Shown here piece after piece: positions 1,927-61,448 of a stretch of DNA of 64,000 nt (position 1 is its first letter; the number at the start of each line of letters is the position of its first letter). A program made the translations under genes and the position numbers. The stretch covers positions 806,001-870,000 of the forward strand of contig CM061248.1 in the NCBI GenBank assembly GCA_022605425.2, written 5' to 3'. A model generated the notes under the pieces. That model was not told the DNA's origin, searched no databases, and saw only the letters and a list, made by a program, of their open reading frames with translations. This DNA comes from Hamiltosporidium tvaerminnensis FI-OER-3-3 (taxonomy: Eukaryota; Fungi; Microsporidia).

Positions 1927-2564
1927 AATTTTTTTATTAAATCCTATTCGCTGTTCTCTAAATCATCTTTATCTGCAGTAATTCCCAAGGATTTTTTTGT
2001 GTTAATAGGGACAATTTTAAGGGGTTGTCCAGCCCCAAAAATTATACATCACTCGTCATTCTCATTTTTCGATAACAAATTTTTGATATTAAGATTTTTT
2101 TCTGGATATTTAAATATACAAATATGTACATTTTTGCCATAATTCGAATATTTATCAAAGAAATTTAGCACTACATTTCTTCTATTCGAGAGTAAAAATT
2201 TCAAAAAGTCATTTAAGATATTTAATATAAATATAATCTTGAAAATGCTTATTGATCTATTATAATGATTTATCAGAAGATGTGATGAGGTTTTTTGTGT
2301 AATAATATTCATAAATTCTATGTCATATTTGTCAAGTAGAATCTGCAAGAGAAATCGAAAGAATAATGTAAGGAATGTTTTCATAAAAAACAATATTACG
2401 TCTGTTTATATAATATTTTTTTAAAACTTGTTTCAGAATTTCTTATCTAAATAACAAATTAGATGGTTTATACATACAAAATTAAAAAAAAGGATAATCC
2501 TATTTGTTTATCATCTATTATTTTATATTTTAAACAAACTTTTTTAAAAATTAAAATGTTAAGT
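1927..2564 (-). repeat. R1, ~640-bp core inverted-repeat unit
   Basis: Shared block from cttaacattttaatttttaaaaaa to ggatttaataaaaaaa (reverse complement); boundaries +/-10 bp. Confidence 0.9.
2049..2393 (-). CDS. R-ORF variant, hypothetical small protein; 2-bp deletion gives a stop 3 codons early
   Basis: ORF track; gacgagtgatg here versus gacgagttggatg in twin R9. Confidence 0.3.
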   Translation of the reverse strand: MFFMKTFLTLFFRFLLQILLDKYDIEFMNIITQKTSSHLLINHYNRSISIFKIIFILNILNDFLKFLLSNRRNVVLNFFDKYSNYGKNVHICIFKYPEKNLNIKNLLSKNENDE

Positions 2565-5500
2565 TTTTAGATAAAAATTTGTTTGAAATGCATGTAATTA
2601 CAGTAAGTTTATTTAATATGTAATACATGACTTTTGAATTTCTATTTTTTCGCTACAAAATTCAATGTAGATTTTAAGGTTAAAAAAATGATTTAATCGA
2701 AATCTAGACAATTAATTATTTTATTCCGTGTAGTTTCTACTTTGAATGAATCTTGAGCTTAAACACCTATAATCTTCTACTAAATAGTAATAAAAAATGT
2801 TTTTTTATTTGAATTGATTTTATATGAGTAACTTACGTTCCGAATGTCGGTTTCTACATTTTTTTGTTGGCCTTATGACATGAAATTCCTACAGTTTTTC
2901 CAATAGAATATATAGATACTAGGTACCGTTTATTGAATTTCAATAATTTTTTCTATAAATTAAAATCCGCTTTTGATATTGTCGTATTTGTTAAAACTAT
3001 ACAAATAAATGTATTATGTTCTAGATGGCTGAAACTTCTAGGAACACAGCTTAAAAATCTTTATATCGAATTAATCTCTTCTTACATGCTTAAATGAATC
3101 TAAAAGTCTTATTAGGTATTAAATCTCATTGATTTTATACAGTTACAGCTCTATAGTGTTCTAGCACAAAAAGAAACTTATATTTTCGTTTATGCTCCTA
3201 AATAAAAAATATCAATTACTTAAATTAGATAAAATGTCTAGATTTTTCTTAGATGCAGTCGTTTTATGGCTCCTTTTACGCTGTAATATTATCTGATGGT
3301 ACAGGGTTGCCGTGCTAAACAATAATATTATATTAAAGAATTTCTAGACTTTCATCAAACAAAACTTCAAAGTATATATTTATTAACCTATAGAGTTTTC
3401 TCAATCGGGTCCAAATTTATAGATTGAATCAGTTATATTAGTCACAAAATTTAGCGCTCACTAGCCTGCATCTTCTTCTATGAAAATTTTAGGAATGGCT
3501 TAAAGTCTTCCCAGGTTAATTTAAATTATTTACACATGACTCTAACTTGATTTTAAGACATAACTTTATCATTTTTTATCTTGAAAGACTTTTAGGAATA
3601 CATTTTTACGCGAAATTCGTTTTATATGTTACTTAAAAATATATTTAAGGCTACACTCAATGTGGAATATTTTCGAACTCGCCTTTTCATTGAGTTTTCG
3701 ATTGACTAAAAAAATTAAGATAAAAAAAGGTAGGAATAAGCCTTCATTTAAATGTTTCTTTTTAAAATATTTCATACCAATGATTTTCGATTTATTGTCA
3801 AACTCACTCTACAACCACAAAAAAACATTCGCATATAAATCACAAAAAATGAAGCAGTGGGACTATTTTAAACATTTAACTATGATTATTGCTAATTCCT
3901 CACTTGTCATATTCTATCAGGCTTCATTATTTTTCTTAGTTCTAATTTTTTTGATCTAAGAAATGCAACGAAGTCAAAAAAAAGGAATTAAAAAATTTGG
4001 TTAAAAAAGATATAGGATATAAGAAAATTGTGAATAAATCGCATGCTTCAATAGAAGAGATTTTAATCCTTCATTTTCTGTCAAATGTAATACATTGTTC
4101 ACAATGAAAAATCAATATGATTTTCGCCATATTGTTTTGCTGTTGCAGCATTTTATGAGAAACCCATCTCTATCATTGCTAGTAAAAAAATTCTCTGGAT
4201 AATCCAAAAGCTTACCATTTTACTTTTTTTTCTTTTATTTGCCTTAGGAATCTTAATTAGTAGAACAAAACACCGTAATTAATTTAAACGAAACCAATTC
4301 AGAAGCATCGTTTTCATAAAAACCACATATTTATCTCAGTATTTATATAATATCGTAAGAAAATATCGATTTTACCCGATATGTTATGCACGATTTTAGA
4401 AATTTCTTCAGCGAATTACAGGCGATCTTTTTATTTGTATTTCTCAGATATTCTCAACATAGAGCTTCGTAGATATTTTTAAAAAGTCATATATTTTCTC
4501 TTTAGTTCTCTTTATATGTTATAGCAATTTTGTTAAGTGCCTAATCTAAGTTAGCTATTAGACAAGCTCGATCGATGTTATTGCCAATCACTCTATCTTT
4601 ATAGCCAGACTCATTTGAAATCATTGCAAGCAAGCTTACAATTGTTTAATTACACCTCACCACTTTCATTTGTTTTATTCGTTCCCTGCTCTTTGATAGA
4701 AAAAGGAGTGTTACAAGTGAAAATTTTTTTTGTTTATTTACAAACTCTTCTCAGTTATCGGTTCTTAGGTTATCCAGCTTTAAATGAAAAAAATAGGATT
4801 TTAAAGCGCATAAGCCTTAATAGATGCCTTTTTTTATCGTATCGAAATTAAAACTTCGTGTTTATATTCAGAATTTGTAAAATCCATCAAAAAACGTCTG
4901 TTATTTTCCGTACTTACACTTATCAACAAGATCTTTCAGAATTATTTCCTTATCATAGAGCTCCTTTTTGTTCAAATCGCATGATTATGCCTTAAAGACC
5001 GTTGATATTGGTCATCATAGCTCGTTCAACCGAATTTAATGTTTTTTTTCAGAAACTTGCATTATTTTTAGTATTATTTCCTAAAATATTCTTATTGCGT
5101 TATTATAACATAGAATTTAAGAAGTAGAAAGAATCTTAACTTGCTCGGCTTTATTACGATACCTTTGCTTTTTGGATGATGTTTTCAACATCTGTCGTAA
5201 ACAATTCACTAGTTTTGATGTTTATATTCGCGTCTATGCTCGAACCTCGCTTTTCAATTTCGATTAATGTTCTAGTAATTTTCATTATTACAAATTTATA
5301 TTCTTCTAATTCATCATTTGCTACGTTTTATAAAGTCATGTTACCAAAACAAGGTATTTTTTATGCGCAAAAATATTAATATTCACAAAGAAAACAGTAA
5401 ATGAAATTTAGAAAAGTTTAGCCAAAAACAGTACGCATTAAGAATTTTCTTATTTCATATGTATGCTTTTTGTTCTATATGCAATTGGTAGTGTAATAAG

Positions 5501-6868
5501 AAATTTTCTATATGGGTTTACCTATAATATACGACAAAAGCCTAATAAATTGAAAAAAAATCACTGTATAGCATTCTTTTTATTAAATGATATCTTGTCG
5601 CAAATAATTTTTGCTTACAACTATGAACCCAAAAAAGTATAATTTTTGATAATTTGAGATAAGTTAACTAAATTAAAGAAAATATTTATCCTATTTCGTT
5701 TTATTTAACTTTTTTAAATTTCTATATTAATTTGCATTACCAGCGAATTGTAGAATTCTCTACATAAGAACAATTTCAACTAAAGTTTAAAGCAGCATAT
5801 AAAACTCAGTTTCTCAAAACATTATAATTCATAGTTCTTGTGAATAATAGACTAATTCAAATCGATGAAGAACCAAGTTCGAGCTTATGCAAATATTTTA
5901 AAATTGCTGTAAGGGTTTTAGTCAGTCCAATTAATTTTCGAAATTAATAAGGCGAAATTCGAAAGAGCGTATATTATGTTTATGTTATTATTATATTGAG
6001 ATTATGGATTCAAGAAATAGATAAAAGGAGATTAAATAGCTACAAAGATATATTTCAAGGTGTGTTTATACGAGCTAAAATGGTTTTAATAATCTATAAT
6101 CATTGCTTAATGAGAAAATGCTTATCTTCTTTTATAATTGTACATGGAAAATAGTCAATAATCATGTAAGTTTAAGAAAAAAAAACTAATCATATCTACA
6201 AAAGTGAATACTTAGACTTCTGGTTTGCGTGAAACTTGGCAGTTAATAAAAATATATTCATCGAGTTCTAAATTATATGGTGTTTTAACAGTATTAAATG
6301 AATTAGATAAAATATCTTCCAATGCGATTAACATTTATGTAAACTTAGATTCTACTTTTAATTTCGTATAGAAAGTCTTAAACTGTGTAACAAAAGTAAA
6401 CATGAACCTGAAATATAATATATTTTTTTTTCTAAATTTCTAAACCTTAGATTTTTAACAAATAGACGTTCACATTCACACGAAACTTTTATGATCTGAT
6501 AAAATTACCTTTTATAATTTAAATTTTAAGAAAAACTCGTGGGAATCACGTTTCGATAGGTTATGGAAATGATTGACATAAAATTGTAGGGAAAAGCATT
6601 TGATCAGCAAATATATGAAATTCTAGTAAATTTCATATTAGTGGTACAATTTATTAGATTTTTAACACCATTAGGGTTTAAGCTGTTTATAATTAAAAAA
6701 TCTATAAAATATAGCTTATATGTGTCTTAATTTTGATCAAATCATTTTTTTAACCTTAAAATCTACATTGAATTTTGAAGCGAAAAAATAGTAAGTTAGA
6801 AATCAGGTATTACATATTAAATAAACTTACTGTAATTACATGCATTTCAAACAAATTTTAGCTAAAAG
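2565..6868. pseudogene. Cassette A: two convergent decayed paralogues, possibly LRR-like
   Basis: The two ends align with each other (acacagcttaaaaatctttatatcgaattaa ~ acacagtttaagactttccatacagaattaa). Remnant KDF*EYIFTRNSFYMLLKNIFKATL at ~3584-3658 matches KEFWKCIFRKK-SFYKPLKHTFKATL in C'. Confidence 0.55.
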
Positions 6869-7508
6869 ACTTAACATTTTAATTTTTAAAAAAGTTTGTT
6901 TAAAATATAAAATCATAGACGATAAACCAATAGGATTATTCTTTTGTTTAATTTTGTATCTATAAACCATCTAATTTGTTATTTAGATAAGAAATTCTGA
7001 AACAAGTTTTAAAAAAATATTATATAAACAGACGTAATATTGTTTGTTATGAAAACATTCCTTACATCATTCTTTCAATTTTTCTTGCTGATTATACTTG
7101 ACAAATATGACATAGAATTTATGAATATTATTACACAAAAAACCTCATCACATCTTCTGATAAATCATTCTAATAGATCAATAAGCATTTTAAAGATTAT
7201 ATTGATATTAAATATATTAAATGACTTTTCGAAATTTTTACTCCCGAATAGAAGAAATGCAGTACTAAATTTCTTTGATAAGTATTTAAATTATGGCAAA
7301 AATGTACATATTTGTATATTTAAGTATCCAGAAAAACATGTTAATATCAAAAATTTGTTACCGAAAACTGAGAATGACGAGTTGAATGTATAAATTTGGG
7401 GGCTGGACAACCCCTTAAAATTGTCCCTATTAATACAAAAAAATCCTTGGGAATTAATGCAGATAAAGATGATTTAGAGAAGAGTGAAGAGGATCTAATA
7501 AAAAAATT
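6869..7508 (+). repeat. R2 core unit
   Basis: Same block, + orientation. Confidence 0.9.
7040..7393 (+). CDS. R-ORF, hypothetical small protein with a hydrophobic, signal-peptide-like N-terminus (first ATG is codon 4, MKTFLT...)
   Basis: 117 codons, open in nearly all copies despite AT-richness; no recognised family; may be the 5' part of a longer decayed gene. Confidence 0.35.
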   Translation: MFVMKTFLTSFFQFFLLIILDKYDIEFMNIITQKTSSHLLINHSNRSISILKIILILNILNDFSKFLLPNRRNAVLNFFDKYLNYGKNVHICIFKYPEKHVNIKNLLPKTENDELNV

Positions 7509-10359
7509 AACAAAACATTTTAACCTTATATTTTTTTGTGACTTAGAAACAATTTTTTTTATAATTACACTTGTAAAAGCAATTATTTTCTACATATAAA
7601 ATGATGTGGTGCTCTTTTAGAGTAAAATAGCATAAATTATATATTATTTGTATTATGATCATAATTTATACTTTAGGTATCGTCTTGGTTTTTCAAAAAC
7701 ATTTTTTCGGCTTTATCTTTGTTATTTTTTATTTAAAATGTATTTACTGGAAAGAAAATATCTACATTAAATACTAGCTTTTGGAAAAGAGTGTTAAAAT
7801 TATTGTAAAAATCGGTTTATAGATTTCGGAGTGATAAAAACCACACTTTTATTATGAGTAAATCCTCCATAATCCTAAATTACAACAGGTTTAAAGAAAT
7901 ACATCGAAAACTAAAAAATTGGATCGAAAACAAATTGCCGTCGTAAAATTCGGCGGACGGTTTATGTAAAGAAAAAAAAATAAGGTTTAACCGGTAAAAA
8001 TGATAGAAATAAAAAATTTAAAAAGAATTGCAATAGATAAACTGACATTAAAAGACAGAGTTATTGGGCCTTTAACATGTTGGATACTACCCAGTGACGG
8101 AATATGTTGGCTTTTATTTGTTCATTTTACCCAGCAAGATTCAGATAGGATTGGAATCGGTAGTCGCTATCACTAAGAAGAAGGGAAGAAGATATTAACG
8201 ATTTCTTGAAGTAATACTATGATGCATTTAACTAAAGCAATAAATAAGATAATTTGGAACTAGGCTTAACATGGGTCTATATAAATCCGAATTATAAACA
8301 TTAATACTAGCAAAAGATTATAAAGTGAGAATTAAAACCATACTTAAATACCTTTAGATTTTCCCAAAAGCAACAAAGAAATACCGACCTGCAGAGGATA
8401 AGAAATTCAAAAAATATAATAGTTTTCTGGATCTTTTAAAAGCATTTAATATAGAAAATAATGGATTCTAAATAAATAAACAAATATATAATACAAAAGA
8501 CTATACTAACTACATTTAAACTTTACAGTAATTTTAATCCTTGTTTATTTCTAACACCAACCCCGTAGAATATATAAAAACATGTGGTTTGCTAGTAATA
8601 TATGCATTCACTAGACCTTTTAAATAATCCTTTAAATTTATAAGCAATGTACAAAATATATGTATTAAAAACCTTGAATGCATATTTCAATAGCTTTAGT
8701 CGATGCTATGATTCATCGGTATCTATATATCTTGCTTTCCATTCTTTAGAAAAATAACTATCAATTAAAAAAGAAGGAAATTAATAAGATTTTTGATAAA
8801 TAACACTCTTATATGCTAGAAATCAACCAATCTTGAACTCGTAAAAAAACGAAGTTGTACAAGAGATAAACCAAAAGCCATTGCTACCTGGCGAGCTAGA
8901 ATCGCAAAAAAGCGCCAACACCAAATTTCCGTCACTTTATCAAGCGACTATAAACTGTAACAGTATTAAAATAGATGATAAATTTTGATAGGTTATCATG
9001 AATTATATCAAATCTATTTATTGGCATATTTTCATCATTATTCATAATACCTATAATATGCATAGACAGTAACAATATTCAAAATAGAAAAGTGCAAAAT
9101 ATATTGTAGTAGTCTGCTGCATATTTTGGGCTATTGTATTTCCCTAGGAATCGAGAATATTTATTTTAAAACACCAATGGTAGAAGAAAGGAAACAACAG
9201 AACTGAAGAGATAATATAAATAGACTTTCCCTTTTAAATAACAATTCCTTAGTTACACGGGTCAACAAACCCTTTTTTTTAAAAGATGGATCCAGTATCT
9301 ATAGCAGATACCTTTTGTCTAGCTGTCTCGAGAGAGGTTACGACAAATATATATGTCATTTTTTAAAAGAATTACGGGTTATTTAGAATCAGTCTCTTTT
9401 ATATTCCCATAAAAGAGAATATCAAAAATAGAATCGTAGCGACCCTCTTAAATCCTAAATAATAGTATTTGGGACAAAAAAATTTCAGCCAAGTGTTTAG
9501 AATATATATTAAAATCTGTTTTAATCGGATTATGAAGCGTCTTATGTTAAAGAATTGGCATATGCTACGAAATAAATCTGGTTAGTGTGCTTCTTTTATA
9601 TAAAAAAATGATTTCAATTTTAAAAAAGAATTAAAAGTAAATCTATTCAGAAATACTCTATACACCACAATTTTATTAATAGTTAAGTCTGGACTATATC
9701 TGATTTCAAATTACAAATATATACCGATATATTTTTATGAAAAAGAAACCGAATTTAAAATACCACTTGCTGTCTAAATAACTCGACACAACTTCTAAAT
9801 ATAATCGACGAAAGAAAACCAAAAAGTTTATACGTTTTTAGAAAGAAAAAACTAATATTATATGGTAAGGAACGGAAAAAATCTAGTGTGTAATAACGTA
9901 GTATGCTATTGATTGCATATTAGCAAAATTATCATATAAAGGCGGTACATATACATAGGAATATATATTTATAAAAAGCACTCAAAAATAGACTTAGAGG
10001 TTTCGATTGTTCAATTAAGGAATTTGAGTAGCTTGCTCTTGCCATTGAAAGTCAAAGTAGAAATGAATTCTTATAATAATAATGGCAGTCATACTGAAAC
10101 AAAAATAGAATATATTCATTTGAAAAATCCCAACTAAAAAGCAGAATTAAAAAGATATTTTATATTCATAAATTAATTATGAAAAAAATATATCTAAATA
10201 TTCGTGAGAAATAGAATCACGTAATATTAAAAAAAATATTTTAAATCGAAAAAGAAAGCATTGGAAACAAAGCAAAGGCGAGATAAAACCAAGCCTAGAA
10301 TAAAATTTATGATGGATTTTTAAATGAGAAACAAATAAAACTTTAAATTTTTTTTAAAT
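7509..10359 (+). pseudogene. Cassette B: decayed B/D/E-family gene
   Basis: Reverse complement of the B' copies; LDLLKAFNIENNGF*INKQIYNTKDYTNYI* at ~8427-8520. Confidence 0.6.
9105..9345 (-). mobile_element. Solo LTR copy in B
   Basis: Reverse complement of 84-324. Confidence 0.7.
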
Positions 10360-10999
10360 TTTTTTTTATTAAATCCTCTTCACTGTTCTTTAAATGATTT
10401 TTATCTGCATTAATTCTCTAAAGGATTTTTTGTGTTAATAGGGACAATTTTAAGGGGTTGTCCAGCCCCAAAAATTATATATTAAATTCGTCATTCTCAT
10501 ACTTCGGTAACAAATTTTTGATATTAACATGTTTTTCTGGATATTTAAATATACAAATATGTACATTTTTGCCATAATTTAAATATTTATCAAAGAAATT
10601 TAGTACTACATTTCTTCTATTCGGGAGTAAAAATTTCGAAAAGTCATTTAAGATATTTAATATAAATATAATCTTAAAAATGCTTATTGATCTATTATAA
10701 TGATTTATCAGAAGATGTGATGAGGTTTTTTCTATAATAGTATTCATAAATTCTATGTCATATTTGTCAAGTAGAATCTGCAAGAAAAATTGAAAGAATA
10801 ATGTAAGGAATGTTTTCATAACAAACAATATTACGTCTGTTTATATAATATTTTTTTAAAACTTGTTTCAGAATTTCTTATCTAAATAACAAATTAGATG
10901 GTTTATACATACAAAATTAAACAAAAGAATAATCCTATTTGTTTATCGTCTATTATTTTATATTTTAAACAAATTTTTTTAAAAATTAAAATGTTAAGT
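10360..10999 (-). repeat. R3 core unit
   Basis: Same block, - orientation. Confidence 0.9.
10475..10828 (-). CDS. R-ORF variant
   Basis: ORF track; protein identical to the 45882 copy. Confidence 0.35.
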   Translation of the reverse strand: MFVMKTFLTLFFQFFLQILLDKYDIEFMNTIIEKTSSHLLINHYNRSISIFKIIFILNILNDFSKFLLPNRRNVVLNFFDKYLNYGKNVHICIFKYPEKHVNIKNLLPKYENDEFNI

Positions 11000-12631
11000 T
11001 TTTGATAAAAATTTCTTAAAAGTAATTTTTTTAATTACAGCAAGGTAATTTATTTATGCCAAATATGATCTTCGACTTTCATTTTTAGGCTACAAAATCT
11101 AAGGTGGATTTTAGGTTTCAATAATGAATCTATGTTTATATTCATTCATCTAATTATTTTTACCTATGTATTTTTTAGCGTTTTTCTGAATTATGAGCAA
11201 ACTTAGGAAAGCATCTAACAGTAGACCATTGAATTGCTTTCATTCTGACCTAATATATTCGAGTTATATTATGTTTGTTAAAGAAAATTTTTCTAGCTTT
11301 TTCTGTAATCTATGACACGTAATTCTCTTGGGTTTTTCAATAAACTATATATCATACTAGGTAACTTATATGATACCTTAAAATTTTTCATTTAACTATG
11401 AAATTCTGCTTTTTTAGAAACCATAGTTGAGAAATTAAGTAAATGAACATATTATATTCCATCCTATAAATAATTTTTTTTGGAATAGTTTGAATTCTTT
11501 TTACAAAATATAAAGTAAATTAAAAGGATTAAATATTCGCAAAAGCCTGGTTAGATATTTTATTTCATTTACTATATACTAATTTGATATACTATATACA
11601 CAAAACCACCCAAATCATTTTTATTTTTTTTTGTGATTATCACTCTTTAACGCGCAAAATATTTATATTTTCTCATAAACTTTGTTTTTTTTTCAAATTA
11701 AGGAGCATTGTTAAGTATAATTACATTTGCACTTCTGCAAAAAAGCACAGCTATCTCTCGTTCAAAAATCACCTTAAAATATTTAAACTTCTTTGACTAA
11801 ATCTAGTATGTAATATATATTGAATTTTTATAGTTTTGTAACCGATAGTTTGCGTCATTAATATATATCACAATGACAATATTAGCGACTTCTAATTTAA
11901 TCTATAGTATGAAAAGTTATTAGATATGACTTAAACTTCTGTACAAGAATTATAAAATTTGCTTAAAAACGAAAATAATTATTTCAATAAGTTAATTTTG
12001 CCAAATTTTGTAAAATGATTTTATATTATACGGTTTTGCAAAAAGAGAGTTTTATATGTTGAATAACCACATATAAACTTTTTGGTGTATAATGTTTTGA
12101 TAATATACCGGTTGAGGCTATTAAATATAGAAATCGAAATAAGTTAATATGAAAAAAAGATTATAAATATTTGCATGTAATTAAATCTTTATCTAAGTAA
12201 GCAGAAAACAAATTCTTTAATTTTATTCAAGAAATGCAAGACAAGAATTATTTGCGACGGAGGTATTATATGATTAAAAAATCTAACATATTGTTTGGAA
12301 TTTTGAATTTTTAGAAGGTTCCTGTTGATCATTATCAAAATCATTAGGAACCCATTCGCGTTTCACAACCAAATTACACACGGAATAAAAATTATTAAGT
12401 AGATAATGCTTTTATACTAAGCTTTCTTATACTGAAAGTTTCTATTTTTTTGCCAACTTTAATTTTTGCGGGAAAAAATATATTATATTTTTAACACTAC
12501 AAAATGAATTATGACAAATATATAATCAGTAGACTTAAAATTATAGTAATTTGCCTTTCAAAATGAGCCGCAACAGAAAATGGGGTTTTAAAAAAGAGCA
12601 GCTGATTTACGTATAGAAACTGGCAAGATAT

Positions 12632-12870
12632 TGTCGTACCCTCTCTTGAAACCCCGGTTAAAAGCTATCTTTGATAGACAGGCCCTATCTTTTAGAATAA
12701 AAAGTTTGTCAACCCTTAAATCTAAAGAATTGTTTGTATAAAGGGTTTTATTTTGGGAATATTCCAGCTCTTCCGTTCATTTCTTTCATCTAACATCAGG
12801 TTAAATAAAATATAATTTTATGTTTAATTAGAAAATACAATAATCTATTTTTATGTAGTAAAATACTGCG
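12632..12870 (+). mobile_element. Diverged solo LTR of the same family in cassette C (239 bp)
   Basis: Starts tgtcgtaccctctc and aligns end to end with the B LTR; ends tactgcg; absent at the homologous site of A' (~31190); no clear TSD. Confidence 0.6.
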
Positions 12871-15113
12871 TTTAAATACGAATGATCTAAAATCATTGTT
12901 AAAACAGATTCTAATTATGCAAGCAAGGTAAGATTTTTACTTTCTACACATCTTCATAGTCATATTGAAGCAGAAAGCAATGCAACGGGAAAGTGTAGAA
13001 AAATGCGGCGAGTTAGGTAAAAAAAAATATCAATGAAATTTATTGAACAGGCTAAGATTGACCAAAATAACATATTTTGAGACGAATTAAGTAATTCGGA
13101 AAAAAATACGCTTAAACCTAAGAAAGAAGTTATAGATTTGGTTATATGCTTAAGTAATTAGGATATATGATGGATTTTGATTAATTATATAAATTTTGCT
13201 TCTAAAACTGAGATTTAATTTTGATATCATTGAAAAAAAAGCTGTCAAGGCTGCAAACGTGTTTAAAATCCTATTTTCTTTGATGTGCGCTTGGTATATT
13301 ACGAACAGAAAATGGAAGAAAGTTTATAAACGAACAAGATTGAATATGTATACTATGAGTTTTCATTTATTACTAAAATGGCAATACATTCATACCACCA
13401 AGGGCATGTGAAGAGATTCTAATTAAACAATTATATGCAAGCTTGCAATTTTTTTGAGAAATGTGGATTGATTTGTAGAAAAGAATCGGACAAAGCTACA
13501 CGCACACTGAGAAGATCAGTTAAAAAACTCTAATATAGGTATTATAAGGCATATGAGATAAACACTTCAATACTAAGTAGATACAATCAGTAAAGGGCAT
13601 TCATGTATTTCTAAAGTAAAAGAATATCTGGAAAATACAAATAAACTATTATAATGCCATTTAATTAAGACCAAGTCGATATTGAGCATGCGATATCTAG
13701 TAAAATCGAAATTTTCTAAGGCCTTACTTTAATATTGTAGCAAATATATAGATCATACGAAAAATGATGTGTATGCAAGATTTTTCTTAAAATATTCATC
13801 TGGTTATTAATACTACTAAGGGGCGTTTTCGATTAAAATTAAAAGACGAAAATAGAAGGCAAAATAGTAAGCTTTAATAAGATAAAAGTTAGGAAATCTG
13901 TTATAAGATGTGTTAGGAATGGCTTTCTAATAAAATTTGCTACAGCAAAAAATATTTTTTTTAGATTGCATAAAATGTATGGTTGTGACGAATTATTCAA
14001 TCTGAATATCAAAATGAATCGTTAAAATCTTATTTATTAAAAACCCTGATTTTTCTTTAGTATTAGTATTTCTTATCACCTTTCTATTTCAATTTCTTAA
14101 TAACTGCTTTTCTTTTTTTAACTTGTTTGCATTTCTTAACATATAAAAACTTATAAATCAAGAAAATAAGACACCATAGAATAGCTTCAGAAAAGAATTT
14201 ATGTCCAATATTTGATTTAAACATGTAGAATTGTTTTAATCTATATTTTTTAACTTTATATGCGAATAATTTTTTGTGATTTTTAATAGGTTTGACAATA
14301 AATATAGGTCTGTGGGGTAAATTTTTTTAAACGAGAATATACTCATTCACTGCTTAATTTGAGCTCTTTTTTGTCTTTGATTTTTAATCTAACTGTACAA
14401 GTTATGCAGCTGATAAATTAAAAAATATTTTACAGAGCGTAGCCTTAAATGTGTGTTTGAGTGTTTTATAAAACGATTTTTTTCCTAAAAATGCATTTCC
14501 AGAACTCTTTAAACGTAAAAAAATAAAAATTCGTGTTAAAAACCAAGTTACAGTTATTAGAATATATTATAAATCGACCTGTATAGGCCTTAAACCCATT
14601 TCAAAAATTTCCGTAGAATAAAAATGCAATTAGATTCAGCTAATGATTTTTTTTATATTTATGATGCAAAATATATATACCATAGCTCGAATAACAGAAT
14701 TTAATAATTTAATGAATATTTACTTAAGATATTGAGTTAAAAAAGTATAAGAAATTCTTTTATGTTAATTTCACCAGAGACTCTTTTGCACCTAGGCAAG
14801 ATTTTAACTTGACGGGTGTAATAGAATCAACTGGATTCTTCGAAATCTTAGACATATTATCTAATTTAAGTCATTGGCAATTTGATATGTAAGAAACCTA
14901 GTCGAAAATTAAATGTCGTTTATAAATGCTAAGAGTATAAGGGGGGTTTTAACATTATAGAATAAATAAAATGTTTAACTTGATTTTGTTTATTGGATCC
15001 CTAACAATTTAAAGTGTTTCGAATTATATAATTCTAAACTTTAACCTCAAGCCTTTACACAACTAGAGTACAGTAACGTAATTACATAATTTCTATAAAT
15101 ATGATTATTTCAT

Positions 15114-15848
15114 TGTTCAGTGGTGGAGGGAGAATCACTACATAAAAAACTTTCTGCTTGGCAATGAGTGTGTAAAACTGGTGTGAAGATCATTGTTTGG
15201 ATTTTTGGTGGAAATACAACCACACTACATCTTCGGTTGTTCCATGGGAGTTGTTATGAAGAGGAGAGTTCTAAGAAAAGGAGAAACTTTTTCTACAAAT
15301 TTATTTGTAGTTTTTTATGTAACCAGATTGCAGACCGCGGCTGAACATGTAGGTAATTGCCATATAAAAGCATGGAAATCTAGCCTTGCTCACTCGGGTT
15401 AGAAGACTTAGCGCCTGGGAGATATAAAAATAAAACCATTTAAAGCTGGGTGAGCTAAGTAGCAGGTTATACCTGTTGGTATGACATTGCACTGTCTAGG
15501 TTGACCCCATGTAAATCTCTGAAATATATCTTAGCTAGAAGTTTATTGGGCTAAGAAATTTAAAGTAAGTGGGAATGCTGCATAGTCTTGGGGGAGCCCA
15601 GGTGGGGCTTCGGGCTCTGATCACACTCCATGCAACGGACATTAACGAAATCCGGGCAACTGCCTCGCCTATTAATTAGGTTCTACACACCTGGTAGATG
15701 GTAGGCTTTGGGACGTAGGTATCGGAGGGGTTACTGATGAGTATTGAGGTAACAGTTATTTATGTTAAACCTAGAACTGCGTTAATGTCATGAAAACAAA
15801 TATAACACTTGCTACTATTGTAAAAAGATGTGATATTTTTAAATAAAG
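15114..15848 (+). mobile_element. 735-bp GC-richer non-coding insertion (SINE-like / structured RNA retrocopy), allele alpha
   Basis: Perfect 6-bp TSD TTTCAT (15108-15113, 15849-15854); absent from paralogue A; ends AAATAAAG; multiple internal stems; strand inferred. Confidence 0.7.
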
Positions 15849-16266
15849 TTTCATAAGTCAGAATTTTTAATTATATGAAAATGATTCGCTATTTCTTATA
15901 GTCCCTAGTGTTATAATTACTCTATAGAAAAATTTCAAAGCGATTATAGACCATGGATTACGGCCATAAACAGAAAAAAATATATTTAAACAGTAGAGAA
16001 CTCAAAACCGATACATCAGAATCAAAAAAATATTTAATGGTTAAATATTAGAAAAATTTAGAGTTTATGTCTTACTTCTATTTATACATCAATAATAAGG
16101 GTAATATAATGTAATTTATAAGTTAAAAAACAAATAATTTCTTGATATTTGAGATAAAGTAGCATTTTCTGATCTCTAAGCCTTGAAAGTCGAAAATTAT
16201 ATATGACATAAATAAATTACCTTGCTGTAATTAAAAAAATTACTTTTAAGAAATTTTTATCTAAAA

Positions 16267-16906
16267 ACTTAACATTTTAATTTTTAAAAAAGTTTGTTTA
16301 AAATATAAAATAATAGACGATAAACAAATAGGATTATTCTTTTGTTTAATTTGGTATGTATAAACCATCTAATTTGTTATTTAGATAAGAAATTCTGAAA
16401 CAAGTTTTAAAAAAATATTATATAAACAGACGTAATATTGTTTGTTATGAAAACATTCCTTACATCATTCTTTCAATTTCTCTTGCTGATTATACTTGAC
16501 AAATATGACATAGAATTTATGAATATTATTACACAAAAAACCTCATCACATCTTCTGATAAATCATTCTAATAGATCAATAAGCATTTTCAAGATTATAT
16601 TGATATTAAATATATTAAATGACTTTTCGAAATTTTTACTCCCGAATAGAAGAAATGTAGTACTAAATTTCTTTGATAAATATTCGAATTATGGCAAAAA
16701 TGTACATATTTGTATATTTAAGTATCCAGAAAAACATGATAATAGCAAAAATTTGTTACCGAAAAATGAGAATGACGAGTTGGATGTATAATTTTTGGGG
16801 CTGGACAACCCCTTAAAATTGTCCCTATTAACACAAAAAATCCTTTAGAGAATTAATGCAGATAAAAATCATTTAAAGAACAGTGAAGAGGATTTAATAA
16901 AAAAAA
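16267..16906 (+). repeat. R4 core unit
   Basis: Same block, + orientation. Confidence 0.9.
16438..16791 (+). CDS. R-ORF variant
   Basis: ORF track. Confidence 0.35.
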   Translation: MFVMKTFLTSFFQFLLLIILDKYDIEFMNIITQKTSSHLLINHSNRSISIFKIILILNILNDFSKFLLPNRRNVVLNFFDKYSNYGKNVHICIFKYPEKHDNSKNLLPKNENDELDV

Positions 16907-45766: not shown

Positions 45767-46406
45767 TTTTTTTTATTAAATCCTCTTCACTGTTCTTTAA
45801 ATGATTTTTATCTGCATTAATTCTCTAAAGGATTTTTTGTGTTAATAGGGACAATTTTAAGGGGTTGTCCAGCCCCAAAAATTATATATTAAATTCGTCA
45901 TTCTCATACTTCGGTAACAAATTTTTGATATTAACATGTTTTTCTGGATATTTAAATATACAAATATGTACATTTTTGCCATAATTTAAATATTTATCAA
46001 AGAAATTTAGTACTACATTTCTTCTATTCGGGAGTAAAAATTTCGAAAAGTCATTTAAGATATTTAATATAAATATAATCTTAAAAATGCTTATTGATCT
46101 ATTATAATGATTTATCAGAAGATGTGATGAGGTTTTTTCTATAATAGTATTCATAAATTCTATGTCATATTTGTCAAGTAGAATCTGCAAGAAAAATTGA
46201 AAGAATAATGTAAGGAATGTTTTCATAACAAACAATATTACGTCTGTTTATATAATATTTTTTTAAAACTTGTTTCAGAATTTCTTATCTAAATAACAAA
46301 TTAGATGGTTTATACATACAAAATTAAACAAAAGAATAATCCTATTTGTTTATCGTCTATTATTTTATATTTTAAACAAATTTTTTTAAAAATTAAAATG
46401 TTAAGT
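45767..46406 (-). repeat. R11 core unit
   Basis: Same block, - orientation. Confidence 0.9.
45882..46235 (-). CDS. R-ORF variant
   Basis: ORF track. Confidence 0.35.
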   Translation of the reverse strand: MFVMKTFLTLFFQFFLQILLDKYDIEFMNTIIEKTSSHLLINHYNRSISIFKIIFILNILNDFSKFLLPNRRNVVLNFFDKYLNYGKNVHICIFKYPEKHVNIKNLLPKYENDEFNI

Positions 46407-48037
46407 TTTTGATAAAAATTTCTTAAAAGTAATTTTTTTAATTACAGCAAGGTAATTTATTTATGCCAAATATGATCTTCGACTTTCATTTTTAGGCTAC
46501 AAAATCTAAGGTGGATTTTAGGTTTCAATAATGAATCTATGTTTATATTCATTCATCTAATTATTTTTACCTATGTATTTTTTAGCGTTTTTCTGAATTA
46601 TGAGCAAACTTAGGAAAGCATCTAACAGTAGACCATTGAATTGCTTTCATTCTGACCTAATATATTCGAGTTATATTATGTTTGTTAAAGAAAATTTTTC
46701 TAGCTTTTTCTGTAATCTATGACACGTAATTCTCTTGGGTTTTTCAATAAACTATATATCATACTAGGTAACTTATATGATACCGTAAAATTTTTCATTT
46801 AACTATGAAATTCTGCTTTTTTAGAAACCATAGTTGAGAAATTAAGTAAATGAACATATTATATTCCATCCTATAAATAATTTTTTTTGGAATAGTTTGA
46901 ATTCTTTTTACAAAATATAAAGTAAATTAAAAGGATTAAATATTCGCAAAAGCCTGGTTAGATATTTTATTTCATTTACTATATACTAATTTGATATACT
47001 ATATACACAAAACCACCCAAATCATTTTTATTTTTTTTTGTGATTATCACTCTTTAACGCGCAAAATATTTATATTTTCTCATAAACTTTGTTTTTTTTT
47101 CAAATTAAGGAGCTGTGTTAAGTATAATTACATTTGCACTTCTGCAAAAAAGCACAGCTATCTCTCGTTCAAAAATCACCTTGAATATTTAAACTTCTTT
47201 GACTAAATCTAGTATGTAATATATATTGAATTTTTATAGTTTTGTAACCGATAGTTTGCATCATTAATATATATCCCAATGACAATATTAGCGACTTCTA
47301 ATTTAATCTATAGTATGAAAAGTTATTAGATATGACTTAAACTTCTGTACAAGAATTATAAAATTTGCTTAAAAACGAAAATAATTATTTCAATAAGTTA
47401 ATTTTGCCAAATTTTGTAAAATGATTTTATATTATACGGTTTTGCAAAAAGAGAGTTTTATATGTTGAATAACCACATATAAACTTTTTGGTGTATAATG
47501 TTTTGATAATATACCGGTTGAGGCTATTAAATATAGAAATCGAAATAAGTTAATATGAAAAAAAGATTATAAATATTTGCATGTAATTAAATCTTTATCT
47601 AAGTAAGCAGAAAACAAATTCTTTAATTTTATTCAAGAAATGCAAGACAAGAATTATTTGCGACGGAGGTATTATATGATTAAAAAATCTAACATATTGT
47701 TTGGAATTTTGAATTTTTAGAAGGTTCCTGTTGATCATTATCAAAATCATTAGGAACCCATTCGCGTTTCACAACCAAATTACACACGGAATAAAAATTA
47801 TTAAGTAGATAATGCTTTTATACTAAGCTTTCTTATACTGAAAGTTTCTATTTTTTTGCCAACTTTAATTTTTGCGGGAAAAAATATATTATATTTTTAA
47901 CACTACAAAATGAATTATGACAAATATATAATCAGTAGACTTAAAATTATAGTAATTTGCCTTTCAAAATGAGCCGCAACAGAAAATGGGGTTTTAAAAA
48001 AGAGCAGCTGATTTACGTATAGAAACTGGCAAGATAT

Positions 48038-51251: not shown

Positions 51252-51669
51252 TTTCATAAGTCAGAATTTTTAATTATATGAAAATGATTCGCTATTTCTT
51301 ATAGTCCCTAGTGTTATAATTACTCTATAGAAAAATTTCAAAGCGATTATAGACCATGGATTACGGCCATAAACAGAAAAAAATATATTTAAACAGTAGA
51401 GAACTCAAAACCGATACATCAGAAACAAAAAAATATTTAATGGTTAAATATTAGAAAAATTTAGAGTTTATGTCTTACTTCTATTTATACATCAATAATA
51501 AGGGTAATATAATGTAATTTATAAGTTAAAAAACAAATAATTTCTTGATATTTGAGATAAAGTAGCATTTTCTGATCTCTAAGCCTTGAAAGTCGAAAAT
51601 CATATATGACATAAATAATTTACCTTTCTGTAATTAAAAAAATTACTTTTAAGAAATTTATATCTAAAA

Positions 51670-52309
51670 ACTTAACATTTTAATTTTTAAAAAAGTTTGT
51701 TTAAAATATAAAATAATAGACGATAAACAAATAGGATTATTCTTTTGTTTAATTTTGTATGTATAAACCATCTAATTTGTTATTTAGATAAGAAATTCTG
51801 AAACAAGTTTTAAAAAAATATTATATAAACAGACGTAATATTGTTTTTTATGAAAACATTCCTTACATTATTCTTTCGATTTCTCTTGCAGATTCTACTT
51901 GACAAATATGACATAGAATTTATGAATATTATTACACAAAAAACCTCATCACATCTTCTGATAAATCATTATAATAGATCAATAAGCATTTTCAAGATTA
52001 TATTTATATTAAATATCTTAAATGACTTTTCGAAATTTTTACTCTCGAATAGAAGAAATGTAGTGCTAAATTTCTTTGATAAATATTCGAATTATGGCAA
52101 AAATGTACATATTTGTATATTTAAATATCCAGAAAAACATGTTAATATCAAAAATTTGTTACCGAAGTATGAGAATGACGAATTTAATATATAATTTTTG
52201 GGGCTGGACAACCCCTTAAAATTGTCCCTATTAACATAAAAAATCCTTTGAAGAATTAATGCAGATAAAGATGATTTAAAGAAGATTGAAGAGGATTTAA
52301 TAAAAAAAA
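51670..52309 (+). repeat. R12 core unit
   Basis: Same block, + orientation. Confidence 0.9.
51841..52194 (+). CDS. R-ORF variant
   Basis: ORF track. Confidence 0.35.
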   Translation: MFFMKTFLTLFFRFLLQILLDKYDIEFMNIITQKTSSHLLINHYNRSISIFKIIFILNILNDFSKFLLSNRRNVVLNFFDKYSNYGKNVHICIFKYPEKHVNIKNLLPKYENDEFNI

Positions 52310-54907
52310 TTTAAAAAAAAATTCAAAGTTTTATTTGTTTCTCATTTAAAAATCCATCATAAATTTTATTCTAGACTTGGTTTTATCTCGCCTTTGCTTT
52401 GTTTCCAATGCTTTCTTTTTCGATTTAAAATATTTTTTTTTAATATTACGTGATTCTATTTCTCACGAATATTTAGATATATTTTTTTCATAATTAATTT
52501 ATGAATATAAAATATCGTTTTAATGCTGCTTTTTATTGATTATTATTCAAATGAGTATATTATAGTGTTTTTTTTTGTATGATTATTTTAATTATAATAA
52601 TTTGTTCTATATTGACACCCGAGAGCAATATTTAGCGCCTCGCATTTTTTAATTGATTAATTAAAATGTATAACTGTAGTTTTGCGTTCTTTGGTTAAAT
52701 ATATGTTTATATTCATACGTATATGTACATACTTTAAATTGTCTTTATGTTAATGTGTAAAAAATTGCATACTATGTTTTTAAATATTAGATTCTTTCCG
52801 TTTAATGAAATAAAATATTGATGTTTTAATTGACGAAATGTATAACCTTTGGTTTTCTTTGATCGACTATATTTAGAAGTTTTTTAGAGTTATTTAGAGA
52901 GCAATAGATATTTGAATTCAAAGTCTTTTAAAAAAAATATCGTTATATATTGATAATTTTATATCAGATTATAGTTTGGGATTAACTATCACTAAAATTT
53001 ATGTAATTAGAGTATTTCTGAATAAATTAACTTAAATTCTTTTTGAAAGTGAAAATTTTATTTTTAAAAATGAGAAGCTTTATGATTACCGGTTTTGGTA
53101 GTAAAGTAGCGAATTTTTTTAGAATAAGGCGCTTATGGTCGATTAAAACGGTTTTTAATGTATCATATAAATTTACACCCTTTTCGTCTCGAATACATAT
53201 ATTTTAGAATTTAAACGGGTCTCTAGTTACTGTCTTCGATATTCTCTTATATAGGAATCTAACAGAGAGTAATTCTAAATAATCGGTATTTCTTTTTAAA
53301 ATAACTGATAATATTTTTTCGGTTTTCGAATTTTTATATTTGTTACAGTCTACTTTTATAATAGATATTATAAATAATCACGGATAAAATAGGCCATCGA
53401 ATAAATGGGAAATAATTTATGATAATTTATTAAAATTAGTAGTTCAAATAAATAGTGTTATGTTTCTATTAGTCGCTCCATAAGCGACAGACATTTGACA
53501 GGGCAGCTTTTAGGAATCCCGGCTCGCCAATTAGAATTTTTTTTGCTTTTCTTTTACGATCCACGTTTTTTTGGGAGTTTACAGTTGATTAAGTTTTTGA
53601 TTTATCAGGTTTAATTATTCAAAATTGTTTTAAGATCTTTTTTTTTTTTTAATTTCTTGTTATTTTTCTGACGAATAGAAATCAAAATATATAGTTGCCC
53701 TTTAGATTATATCAACTAAAGCTTTTGAGTTTGCCTTTAAAAGGGTTTGCCTTAATAAATTTAAATACATTGCTTATTAATTTACAGAATTATTCATATT
53801 ACCCAGAAAATCTGTATATTAGTATAAACCTATTTATTTTCTATATTTCACGGGTATAATATTAATAATACACAATGATTCTAATTTCCGAAACTATAAA
53901 AGCAGTTAGTATGATCTTTGGGAATATATCGTCGTTCTTTCATTCTTAATAAATTATTTTTTATATTAAAGGCTTTTATAAGAGCCATATAAATATTTAA
54001 TATTATAAATTTTTTAGACTCTGCGGTTCATATTTCATTGATTCTTTTGAAAAATTCAAGAAGGTGTTTAAATAAAGTTTTAATCCACACTTTGTGATCT
54101 TTTAATTCATTTAATGTTAATAATATGAATATATACATAGACCACCAGTAAGCCTGAATCCTATGTATCTTATGTATTTTTCTGATTAATTGCAATCTGT
54201 ATTACTTCAAAATTTAGTTAATATCTTCTTTATTTCTTCTTCATGATAGTACCTACCTATTCTAGACCACTTTTAATCATTGATGTTGAAAATAAACAAA
54301 TTTAAATCAGAAAACTCTGTCATTGTTGAGTGGTTATGACATTCATTAGTTTATTCCTCTATCTTATAAAGTCTGTATTTTTAGTTACCCTATTTCAAAA
54401 TTTCAAGTTCATCTTTTTCTCCGTCAAACTCTATACTTTTTTGTTTCATAAGTTTTAATCCGAATTCCACGAAAGGAAATTTGTTTTAAATCCAGTCCTG
54501 TGGTTAGGATTCGGGTATTTAGATCTGTTGTAATTTAGTAAAATAGAGATTGCCTCCCAGAATAAGTATGGTTTATATCCTACCAAAATGTATACAAATA
54601 TTTTTACAATAATTTTACACAATCATTACCAAGCAGCCTGTTTTTAAAGTGGTTGTTTTCTTTCCACCTAAAACATCTTAAATAAGAAAAAACAAAGTAA
54701 ATTCAGAAAATACATTTTTTGAAGAAGCTAGACGAGATCTAAATTATTGATTACAATCATAGTACAAACTATAGATAAATTGTGCCATTTTACTCTAAAA
54801 AGAGTTCTCAATCATTTTAAATATAGAAAATAATTTCTTAGTACTTGTTTTTAATAAAAAAAAGTTCTAATTTAAAAAACATAAAAAATTTTAAATATAT
54901 TTTTTTA
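52310..54907 (-). pseudogene. Cassette D (second period, same orientation as the first D)
   Basis: Twin of 16907-19502. Confidence 0.6.
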
Positions 54908-55547
54908 AATTTTTTTATTAAATCCTATTCGCTGTTCTCTAAATCATCTTTATCTGCAGTAATTCCCAAGGATTTTTTTGTGTTAATAGGGACAATTTTA
55001 AGGGGTTGTCCAGCCCCAAAAATTATACATCCAACTCGTCATTCTCATTTTTCGGTAACAAATTTTTGCTATTATCATGTTTTTCTGGATACTTAAATAT
55101 ACAAATATATACATTTTTGCCATAATTCGAATATTTATCAAAGAAATTTAGTACTACATTTCTTCTATTCGGGAGTAAAAATTTCGAAAAGTCATTAACT
55201 ATATTTAATATAAATATAATCTTGAAAATGCTTATTGATCTATTATAATGATTTATCAGAAGATGTGATGAGGTTTTTTGTGTAATAATATTCATAAATT
55301 CTATGTCATATTTGTCAAGTATAATCAGCAAGAGAAATTGAAAGAATAATGTAAGGAATGTTTTCATAACAAACAATATTACGTCTGTTTATATAATATT
55401 TTTTTAAAACTTGTTTCAGAATTTCTTATCTAAATAACAAATTAGATGGTTTATACATACAAAATTAAACAAAAGAATAATCCTATTTGTTTATCGTCTA
55501 TTATTTTATATTTTAAACAAACTTTTTTAAAAATTAAAATGTTAAGT
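54908..55547 (-). repeat. R13 core unit
   Basis: Same block, - orientation. Confidence 0.9.
55023..55376 (-). CDS. R-ORF variant
   Basis: ORF track. Confidence 0.35.
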   Translation of the reverse strand: MFVMKTFLTLFFQFLLLIILDKYDIEFMNIITQKTSSHLLINHYNRSISIFKIIFILNIVNDFSKFLLPNRRNVVLNFFDKYSNYGKNVYICIFKYPEKHDNSKNLLPKNENDELDV

Positions 55548-55965
55548 TTTTAGATATAAATTTCTTAAAAGTAATTTTTTTAATTACAGAAAGGTAAATT
55601 ATTTATGTCATATATGATTTTCGACTTTCAAGGCTTAGAGATCAGAAAATGCTACTTTATCTCAAATATCAAGAAATTATTTGTTTTTTAACTTATAAAT
55701 TACATTATATTACCCTTATTATTGATGTATAAATAGAAGTAAGACATAAACTCTAAATTTTTCTAATATTTAACCATTAAATATTTTTTTGATTCTGATG
55801 TATCGGTTTTGAGTTCTCTACTGTTTAAATATATTTTTTTCTGTTTATGGCCGTAATCCATGGTCTATAATCGCTTTGAAATTTTTCTATAGAGTAATTA
55901 TAACACTAGGGACTATAAGAAATAGCGAATCATTTTCATATAATTAAAAATTCTGACTTATGAAA

Positions 55966-59180: not shown

Positions 59181-60807
59181 ATATCTTGCCTGTTTCTATA
59201 TGTGAATCGGCTGCTCCTTTTTAAAACCTTATTTTCTGTTGCGGCTCATTTTGAAAGGCAAATTACTATAATTTTAAGTCGACTGATTCAATATTTGTCA
59301 TAATTCATTTTGTATTGCTAAAAATATAATATATTTTTTCCCGCAAAAATTAAAGTTGGCAAAAAAATAGAAACTTTCAGTATAAGAAAGCTTAGTATAA
59401 AAGCATTATCTACTTAATAATTTTTATTCCGTGTGTAATTTGGTTGTGAAACGCGAATGGGTTCCTAATGATTTTGATAATGATCAACAGGAACCTTCTA
59501 AAAATTGAAAATTCCAAACAATATGTTAGATTTTTTAATCATATAATACCTTAGTCGCAAATAATTCTTGTCGTGCATTTCTTGAATAAAATTAAAGAAT
59601 TTGTTTTCTGCTTACTTAGATAAAGATTTAATTACATGCTAATATTTATAATCTTTTTTTCATATTAACTTATTTCGATTTCTATATTTAATAGCCTCAA
59701 CCGGTATATTATCAAAACATTATACACCAAAAAGTTTATATGTGGTTATTCAACATATAAAACTCTCTTTTTGCAAAACCGTATAATATAAAATCATTTT
59801 ACAAAATTTGGCAAAATTAACTTATTGAAATAATTATTTTCGTTTTTAAGCAAATTTTATAATTCTTGTACAGAAGTTTAAGTCATATCTAATAACTTTT
59901 CATAATATAGATTAAATTAGAAGTCGCTAATATTGTCATTGTGATATATATTAATGACGCAAACTATCGGTTACAAAACTATAAAAATTCAATATATATT
60001 ACATACTAGATTTAGTCAAAGAAGTTTAAATATTTTAAGGTGATTTTTGAACGAGAGATAGCTGTGCTTTTTTGCAAAAGTGCAAATGTAATTATACTTA
60101 ACACAGCTCCTTAATTTGAAAAAAAAACAAAGTTTCTGAGAAAATATAAATATTTTGCGCTTTAAAGAGTGATAATTACAAAAAAAAATGATTTGGGTGG
60201 TTTTGTGTATATAGTATATCAAATTAGTATATAGTAAATGAAATAAAATATCTAACCAGGCTTTTGCGAATATTTAATCCTTATAATTTACTTTATATTT
60301 CGTAAAAAGAATTCAAACTATTCCAAAAAAAATTATTTGTAGGATGGTATATAATATGTTCATTTACTTAATTTCTCAACTATGGTTTCTAAAAAAGCAG
60401 AATTTCATAGTTAAATGAAAAATTTTAAGGTATCATATAAGTTACCTAGTATGATATATAGTTTATTGAAAAACCCAAGAGAATTACGTGTCATAGATTA
60501 CAGAAAAAGCTAGAAAAATTTTCTTTAACAAACATAATATAACTCGAATATATTAGGTCAGAATGAAAGCAATTCAATGGTCTACTGTTAGATGCTTTCC
60601 TAAGTTTGCTCATAATTCAGAAAAACGCTAAAAAATACATAGGTAAAAATAATTAGATGAATGAATATAAACATAAATTCATTATTGAAACCTAAAATCC
60701 ACCTTAGATTTTGTAGCCTAAAAATGAAAGTCGAAGATCATATTTGGCATAAATAAATTACCTTGCTGTAATTAAAAAAATTAATTTTAAGAAATTTTTA
60801 TCTAAAA

Positions 60808-61448
60808 ACTTAACATTTTAATTTTTAAAAAAGTTTGTTTAAAATATAAAATAATAGATGATAAACAAATAGGATTATCCTTTTTTTAATTTTGTATGTA
60901 TAAACCATCTAATTTGTTATTTAGATAAGAAATTCTGAAACAAGTTTTAAAAAAATATTATATAAACAGACGTAATATTGTTTGTTATGAAAACATTCCT
61001 TACATTATTCTTTCAATTTTCTCTTGCAGATTCTACTTGACAAATATGACATAGAATTTATGAATATTATTACACAAAAAACCTCATCACATCTTCTGAT
61101 AAATCATTATAATAGATCAATAAGCATTTTCAAGATTATATTTATATTAAATATCTTAAATGACTTTTCGAAATTTTTACTCCCGAATAGAAGAAATGTA
61201 GTACTAAATTTCTTTGATAAATATTTAAATTATGGCAAAAATGTACATATTTGTATATTTAAGTATCCAGAAAAACATGATAATATCAAAAATTTATTAC
61301 CGAAAAATGAGAATGACGAGTTGGATGTATAATTTTTGGGGCTGGACAACCCCTTAAAATTGTCCCTATTAAAACAAAAAAATCCTTTAGAGAATTAATG
61401 CAGATAAAGATGATTTAAAGAAGATTGAAGAGGATTTAATAAAAAAAA
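60808..61448 (+). repeat. R14 core unit (last of the array)
   Basis: Same block, + orientation. Confidence 0.9.
60978..61332 (+). pseudogene. R-ORF variant with a +1 frameshift in the N-terminal T-run (real or sequencing error)
   Basis: tttcaattttctcttg versus tttcaatttctcttg; ORF track starts only at 61024. Confidence 0.4.

Follow-up and report, generated by a model that had tools for sequence, protein, structure and literature searches.

Does a run of alternating inverted repeats in a microsporidian genome form a hub that inverts the DNA between its repeats, or does it have another origin and role? The question arises from a stretch of 64,000 nucleotides (nt) of Hamiltosporidium tvaerminnensis FI-OER-3-3 (GCA_022605425.2, contig CM061248.1, positions 806,001 to 870,000, forward strand; hereafter the window), in which copies of a repeat, R, alternate with spacers A to D. 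A reading made from the sequence only had proposed a shufflon-like array. H. tvaerminnensis is a diploid microsporidian parasite of Daphnia (PMC10845963) with an assembly of 21.64 Mb in 17 contigs and 26.6 % GC (PMC10542269). The sequence set analysed here comprised 21,638,905 bases in 17 contigs, and the GC content of the window was 26 %. The locus is probably a palindromic gene array under concerted evolution, in which an unannotated gene for a small protein was multiplied by rounds of inverted and unequal duplication.

Self-BLAST of the window identified R as 14 repeats of 750–830 bp between ~1.9 and 61.5 kb, strictly alternating in orientation, and a genome search added three copies upstream, giving 17 over ~72 kb of contig 3 (796–867 kb of 1444 kb, mid-contig). 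The core common to all copies is 665 bp long, extending from 200 bp before an ATG to 15 bp past an AATAAA, with a mean pairwise identity of 95.2 % (range 92.3–100). Orientation switched at R only; spacers A, B and C occurred in both orientations and D in one. The spacers measure 4.0 kb (A), 5.0 kb (C), 2.8 kb (B) and 2.5 kb (D) and contain no conserved open reading frame (ORF) of more than 100 amino acids (aa). Spacers A and C were ~61 % alike at aligned sites and B and D ~72 %, while the sequence from 61.5 kb, which forms the right boundary, matched the B and D spacers at ~60 % over 1 kb (E ~1e-46; best shuffled control 7e-6). The strict alternation of 14 copies, the changes of orientation confined to R, the resemblance of ~95 % between R copies and that of 60–70 % between paralogous spacers had all been described in the sequence-only reading and were reproduced. 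Two duplications were resolved, one inverted and of 15 kb (1896–16936 versus 34501–19472, 97.1 %) and one direct and of 35.4 kb (1–26115 versus 35402–61527, 98.8 %). The entire array pattern is one 15-kb inverted duplication nested in one 35.4-kb direct duplication.

R is most likely a whole transcription unit and not a non-coding hub. It comprises ~200 bp of upstream DNA, a 114-codon ORF, a GC-rich element 5 nt past the stop and AATAAA. The ORF, at 111–114 codons, was intact in 16 of 17 array copies, the exception being R14, in which the frameshift may be real or an assembly error. Across five deep lineages (the contig 3 array, contig 16, contig 9, the contig 12 array and the contig 12 single copy) this frame contained no stop and the other five frames contained 2–15 stops each; in simulation, a neutral frame survived with a probability of 0.12 when each lineage had diverged by 9 % and of 0.02 when it had diverged by 18 %. 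Variation between lineages was lowest at the second codon position (92/62/91, P=0.03), with a ratio of nonsynonymous to synonymous divergence (dN/dS) of 0.37–0.71. Between R copies with unrelated flanks, identity was 92–100 % starting ~200 bp upstream of the ATG and continuing across the ORF, and dropped just past AATAAA, which lies 98–106 nt past the stop in every lineage, at the end of R homology. This signal marks mRNA 3′ ends in the species, ~20 nt upstream of them (PMC10542269). Because the limits of R fit a transcription unit, spacers A and C can be read as head-to-head and B and D as tail-to-tail intergenic regions.

The 16 intact array copies encode 13 distinct proteins. In hydropathy profiles the N-terminus was hydrophobic, as was another stretch near residues 45–60, suggesting that these small products are probably secreted or membrane-anchored. 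No known domain was detected in R with Pfam, Rfam and tRNA scans found nothing, and an AlphaFold2 model from a 12-sequence alignment (mean predicted local distance difference test score 52, three helices) was too poor for a fold search. The window contains no ORF of 120 aa or longer. Alternative genetic codes (tables 4, 6, 10, 15, 16 and 29) gave no coherent long genes, the long frames that appeared everywhere under the ciliate code being due to low GC content. Stop-codon readthrough into a conserved extension was ruled out by one extra base inside the 3′ element of the contig 12 family, which changes the frame.

Members of the R gene family number 39 in the genome. Solitary copies on contigs 16 and 9 keep the frame at 65–68 % amino-acid identity, and 20 copies on contig 12 keep it at ~30 %, none of them with a stop inside the match. 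A second array (C12:1797830-1944668) spans 147 kb and holds 18 intact family genes of mixed orientation. Five pairs among them stand head-to-head, each with the same 6.6-kb spacing. The array was covered by 10 kb of sequence and otherwise by coordinates. The one pair read has inverted arms of 1165 bp at 96.3 % identity, and two genes of opposite orientation from different pairs, 1840023(+) and 1932496(-), encode identical proteins. Inverted amplification would thus be a habit of the family, as the contig 12 array also contains inverted pairs. Searches of Pfam, of 5.8-billion and 1.84-billion protein collections and of the ESM Atlas returned no relatives outside Hamiltosporidium; as judged by these searches, the family is found only in this genus. 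The only database relatives were two H. magnivora proteins, annotated as such and 80–92 % identical to the contig 12 type. One H. magnivora gene model, P0004 (L019:117-3491), joins the family ORF to a distant exon and is probably mis-spliced, because the L019 DNA has a normal stop and 3′ element at ~385-421. Two longer relatives on contig 15, annotated as LUQ84_3615 and LUQ84_3613 (271 and 279 aa), had no match to the 3′ element at one mismatch. A 20-kb stretch at 1.12 Mb of contig 3 was inspected and showed no relation to R.

Comparison of R with its flanks indicated homogenization of the gene unit. Among R copies whose flanks are 57–70 % alike, the old contexts, synonymous divergence was 0.05–0.08 as against 27–39 % in the spacers, so that R is ~5-fold less diverged than its oldest flanks; for solitary copies the proportion of synonymous differences (pS) was 0.21–0.32. 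The earlier suggestion that R is homogenized much faster than its flanks was therefore correct. A four-gamete test on the 17 copies found 2240 of 5995 site pairs incompatible, implying a minimum of 21 exchanges in 800 bp, and the upstream flank types U1 and U4 were each paired with two downstream types, which bears out the accompanying suggestion of recombination: exchanges inside R have joined different flanks. Several mosaic alleles recurred identically one period apart (R0=R8, R-1=R7, R3=R11), which argues against random polishing noise. The spacers showed sharp patches of allele sharing. The mosaic structure of R and its low divergence relative to its oldest flanks support gene conversion and crossovers within R; as under concerted evolution, the paralogues are more alike than their age allows and carry mosaic tracts.

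Although exchanges have occurred within R, the spacer orientations are periodic and not shuffled. The eight head spacers reverse direction from one to the next without exception, which makes each tail spacer the centre of a palindrome, and in 8 of 8 spacer pairs one 35.4-kb period apart the orientation is shared. The chance of this agreement is 1/256 with free flipping since the duplication; with the 35.4-kb duplication left out of account, alternation by itself would give ~1/8. No match to the recombinase families Phage_integrase (PF00589) or Resolvase (PF00239) was found in the genome, whereas the same profiles were positive in 14 and 12 of 14 control genomes; the earlier statement that the window holds no recombinase gene thus extends, for these two families, to the whole genome. 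With R coinciding with a conserved protein-coding unit, the proposal of a dedicated recombination hub producing many isomers was not supported. The genome has three Rad51-family genes. A Rad51-family gene itself occurs in two inverted copies that score equally and lie 13 kb apart (C1:1488211-1488942(-) and 1502204-1502935(+)).

Inversion by general recombination between long inverted repeats is known from the mating-type (MAT) flip-flop of Ogataea and Komagataella and from the genome isomers of herpes simplex virus (HSV), and inversion in this array, if it occurs, would use the same route. One alternative is that the same gene array undergoes homologous recombination between neighbouring inverted copies so frequently that a single clonal infection contains many structural isomers and new mosaic proteins. 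The substrates are present, as 17 inverted 665-bp repeats 2.5–5 kb apart, and the two-fold pairing of U1 and U4, the 13 distinct proteins and the apparent differences in copy number between samples (below) are in keeping with it. However, the eight period-equivalent spacer pairs agree, four of six possible new upstream/downstream combinations with D2 or U2/U3 are absent, and no strand-changing joint is listed in the contigs of three DNA runs, contigs that cannot span R. We regard frequent isomerization as unlikely. No expressed-versus-silent position is evident, unlike in the MAT flip-flop, and because the proximal upstream DNA of every gene is part of R, the chief effect of a flip would be to reshuffle alleles.

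Sequence of the window was present in 20 runs of seven studies, and the contigs of three DNA runs contained spacer C, R and the boundary. Copy number was estimated, roughly, from contig depth relative to the single-copy flank. The depth of spacer C was ~2.6–2.8 in runs X14 and X5 and 5.1–5.8 in X16, which derives from a related organism, probably H. magnivora (flank 1.1 % different), and in which one R contig reached 23-fold depth. In X5, the C4-type allele was at 1.0x and the other C alleles at 2.1x single-copy depth, so more than two C copies are needed on average. These figures indicate a real multi-copy array and suggest copy-number differences between samples, the number of array copies probably varying between isolates. 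A mean of three C copies could reflect heterozygosity for 17 and 9 genes or, alternatively, partial over-expansion of the assembly. The second of these options corresponds to an alternative in which the array is real, with ~9–13 genes, and its newest 35.4-kb direct duplication is an artefact of joined diploid haplotypes or an over-expanded repeat. Several period pairs are nearly identical (0.07–0.18 % differences), spacer C is at ~2.7x depth in two runs against four assembled copies, large tandem multicopy repeats are named as the main obstacle to the assembly (PMC10542269), and the species is diploid (PMC10845963). Against this, the X5 depths, the possession by the period junction of its own chimeric spacer, B2, and the ~5 C copies of the related organism make an artefact quite unlikely.

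The GC-rich element past the stop is specific to the family. A 16-nt motif occurs 39 times in the genome, always 5 nt past the stop of a family member and never elsewhere (reversed-motif control, 0 matches), and is nearly invariant across all 39 copies while protein identity falls to 30 %; it is also present in both H. magnivora loci (L018:305-334 and L019:392-421). Together with a TGTCCC a few bases further on, the motif can be drawn as an H-type pseudoknot whose helices have 4 and 5 pairs. Pairing holds in all 72 cells, the sole helix change being a C to U opposite G in two lineages, and the pair counts contained no compensatory change, so the pseudoknot is offered as a hypothesis. Nested-only folding was no better than for shuffled sequences (z −0.4 to +0.9). 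A Helitron 3′ end was ruled out, as there is no CTRR terminus and homology continues past the element.

This near-invariant element with its G4/C4 dyad could be taken for the short site of a true shufflon, at which a dedicated site-specific recombinase acts. The R64/IncI shufflon, with Rci, sfx sites and pilV (10.1101/2024.10.25.620183, PMC5430464), likewise has several segments between oppositely oriented repeats. It differs in its short crossover sites, where the present array has 665 bp of homology with exchanges distributed over all of R and not centred on the motif. Here there is no match to either recombinase family, no fixed gene receives alternative ends, the cassettes lack alternative coding ends, and the whole ORF lies inside R. 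The element also occurs at unpaired single copies (contigs 9 and 16 and two on contig 12), always 5 nt past the stop, as an mRNA element would. The array lacks the testable features of a shufflon, and we consider that explanation highly improbable. Equally little credence is given to R being a non-coding repeat, such as a small non-autonomous mobile element, with an incidental ORF, for although solitary copies exist on contigs 9, 16 and 12 and no known domain was found, those copies bring kilobases of flanking spacer homology in the manner of segmental duplications, the frame is held at 30 % amino-acid identity, and the boundaries of R match a promoter and poly(A) signal.

Several points weigh against a palindromic array of functional genes. 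An RNA run, X24, contained 0 reads of the organism, and the array genes are missing from the protein collection and the public annotation. Selection within the array is weakly marked, with variable sites spread evenly over codon positions (17/17/16) and a pN/pS (nonsynonymous to synonymous polymorphism) of ~0.64, indicating that selection there is relaxed or diversifying. Secretion was judged from hydropathy only, a single assembly gives no measure of how often spacers invert, and contig depth is a rough gauge of copy number.

The palindromic gene array could have arisen as follows. R would be one gene of a Hamiltosporidium-specific family together with its promoter-proximal DNA, 3′ untranslated region element and polyadenylation signal. 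An ancient inverted duplication may have placed two genes head-to-head, because spacer A is still faintly self-complementary (its two ends are 59 % alike over 870 bp, E 4e-26). Repair driven by homology, or template switching, involving gene copies of opposite orientation would then have produced larger palindromes centred on tail spacers: an old one at B, with A and C as arms, one at a B-like spacer and one at D. The genes lie within these arms, which extend for 15 kb at 97.1 % around D and for 9.2 kb at 93 % around the B-like spacer. One 35.4-kb period would have been added recently, and patchy gene conversion would keep the mosaic gene units at ~95 % identity as the spacers diverge. Recombination between inverted copies could in principle turn a spacer round, but presumably does so over evolutionary time or at the level of populations, by general recombination of the Rad51 type and not as a programmed switch.

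Two routes may account for the newest increment. The first is a DUP-TRP/INV-DUP (duplication–triplication with inverted duplication) event, a class of rearrangement mediated by inverted low-copy repeats (PMC11293582). In these terms, the increment can be described as a left block present twice, a middle part (half of B, R3 and C) triplicated with inversion, and a duplicated D between inverted repeats, and the sizes sum accordingly (17 + 2 x 7.6 + 3.1 = 35.3 kb); spacer B2 is a clean chimera, changing from B1-like to first-spacer-like sequence at a single switch (Table 1). The second junction differs in having long homology and not microhomology. In the second route, the first and last genes would have undergone direct unequal crossover, with conversion afterwards. 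This may explain why R6 and the first array copy, upstream of the window, have a 3′ deletion and 5′ variants in common, and why C2 carries patches otherwise found only in C4; these allele marks fit this route equally well.

Palindromic gene amplicons under concerted evolution include sex-chromosome palindromes, inverted Hsp70 pairs and silkmoth chorion gene pairs. The array resembles them in having genes in inverted arms around a spacer, patchy homogenization strongest in or near genes, and changes in copy number by unequal exchange. It is unlike them in that the unit is iterated 17 times in strict alternation, the gene itself serves as the repeat wherever direction changes, and nested palindromes of three or more ages can be distinguished. 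In Leishmania amplification (PMC4028189) and the inverted triplications formed in yeast by ODIRA, an origin-dependent amplification at inverted repeats (PMC4689423), inverted repeats similarly seed arrays of unit, spacer, inverted unit and spacer. However, the Leishmania repeats are non-coding and their products often extrachromosomal, and ODIRA depends on an origin and on short repeats that lie close together, whereas the junction repeats here are 665-bp genes separated by 2.5–2.8 kb spacers in a stable chromosomal array. By analogy, the locus is best explained as working like palindromic amplicons and inverted-repeat-mediated amplification.

Two dispersed repeats were observed in the spacers. 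All C copies carry an element of ~730 bp (15090–15855, 20558–21321, 50491–51254 and 55963–56728) that is 93–95 % alike to many genome-wide copies (1381 first-look candidates), was inserted in C after the split of A and C, and shows no obvious terminal inverted repeats. The same element forms an adjacent inverted pair just left of the array (window coordinates ~-15530 to -13810). A 250-bp repeat within B (~9080–9350) is also found ~1.8 kb upstream of eight contig 12 family genes.

Table 1. Gene units, spacers and related features (window positions unless a locus is named)
Feature	Position	Strand	Remarks
R1	1923..2584	-	Gene unit; ORF 2049-2384, 111 aa, stop earlier than in other copies
R2	6849..7512	+	Gene unit; ORF 7049-7393 (114 aa); 3′ element at 7399; AATAAA at 7497
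R3	10355..11019	-	Gene unit; ORF 10475-10819
R4	16247..16911	+	Gene unit; ORF 16447-16791
R5	19499..20162	-	Gene unit; ORF 19618-19962
R6	25388..26052	+	Gene unit; ORF 25588-25932
R7	28885..29548	-	Gene unit; ORF 29004-29348
R8	33812..34476	+	Gene unit; ORF 34012-34356
R9	37325..37989	-	Gene unit; ORF 37445-37789
R10	42253..42916	+	Gene unit; ORF 42453-42797
R11	45762..46426	-	Gene unit; ORF 45882-46226
R12	51650..52314	+	Gene unit; ORF 51850-52194
R13	54904..55567	-	Gene unit; ORF 55023-55367
R14	60787..61453	+	Final gene unit; a frameshift close to the start in this assembly leaves a frame of 17 codons
Spacer A	2585..6848	+	Head-to-head; other copies 29549-33811 (reversed), 37990-42252
Spacer C	11020..16246	-	Head-to-head, paralogue of A; other copies 20163-25387, 46427-51649, 55568-60786; carries dispersed 730-bp element
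Spacer B	7513..10354	-	Tail-to-tail; other copies 26053-28884, 42917-45761
B-like variants (E1/E2)	1-1922 and 34477-37324		95-96% identical to B
Spacer D	16912..19498	+	Tail-to-tail; centre of palindrome with 15-kb arms; second copy 52315-54903
Switch point in spacer B2	27342..27527		B1-like before, like the array's first tail spacer after
Right boundary	61454..62470	+	Single-copy unconverted paralogue (~60%) of the first kilobase of the tail spacers
3′ element (example)	7399..7427	+	G4-CT-GGACA-A-C4-N6/8-TGTCCC, 5 nt after stop
Longer relatives, contig 15	L012:4850-5665; L013:4147-4986	+; -	Internal ILKKTLFEI-type repeat

These results favour a gene-family reading over a shufflon reading, and uncover an unannotated family of 39 copies that is restricted to Hamiltosporidium, lies in part in two inverted arrays, is mosaic and seemingly varies in copy number. 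The 3′ element is a candidate RNA regulatory structure. A bolder proposal, which we hold to be improbable, is that the array is an active diversifying locus, where inverted gene copies recombine during a clonal infection, repeatedly flip spacers and yield new mosaic forms of a secreted or surface protein facing the Daphnia host, and where the 3′ pseudoknot controls translation or stability; if true, a microsporidian would possess a system resembling antigenic variation that requires no recombinase. The two arrays of this family are natural candidates for genes that act in host interaction, within a much-studied model of host–parasite coevolution, and they indicate that genome expansion in a microsporidian with a large genome owes something to inverted duplication.

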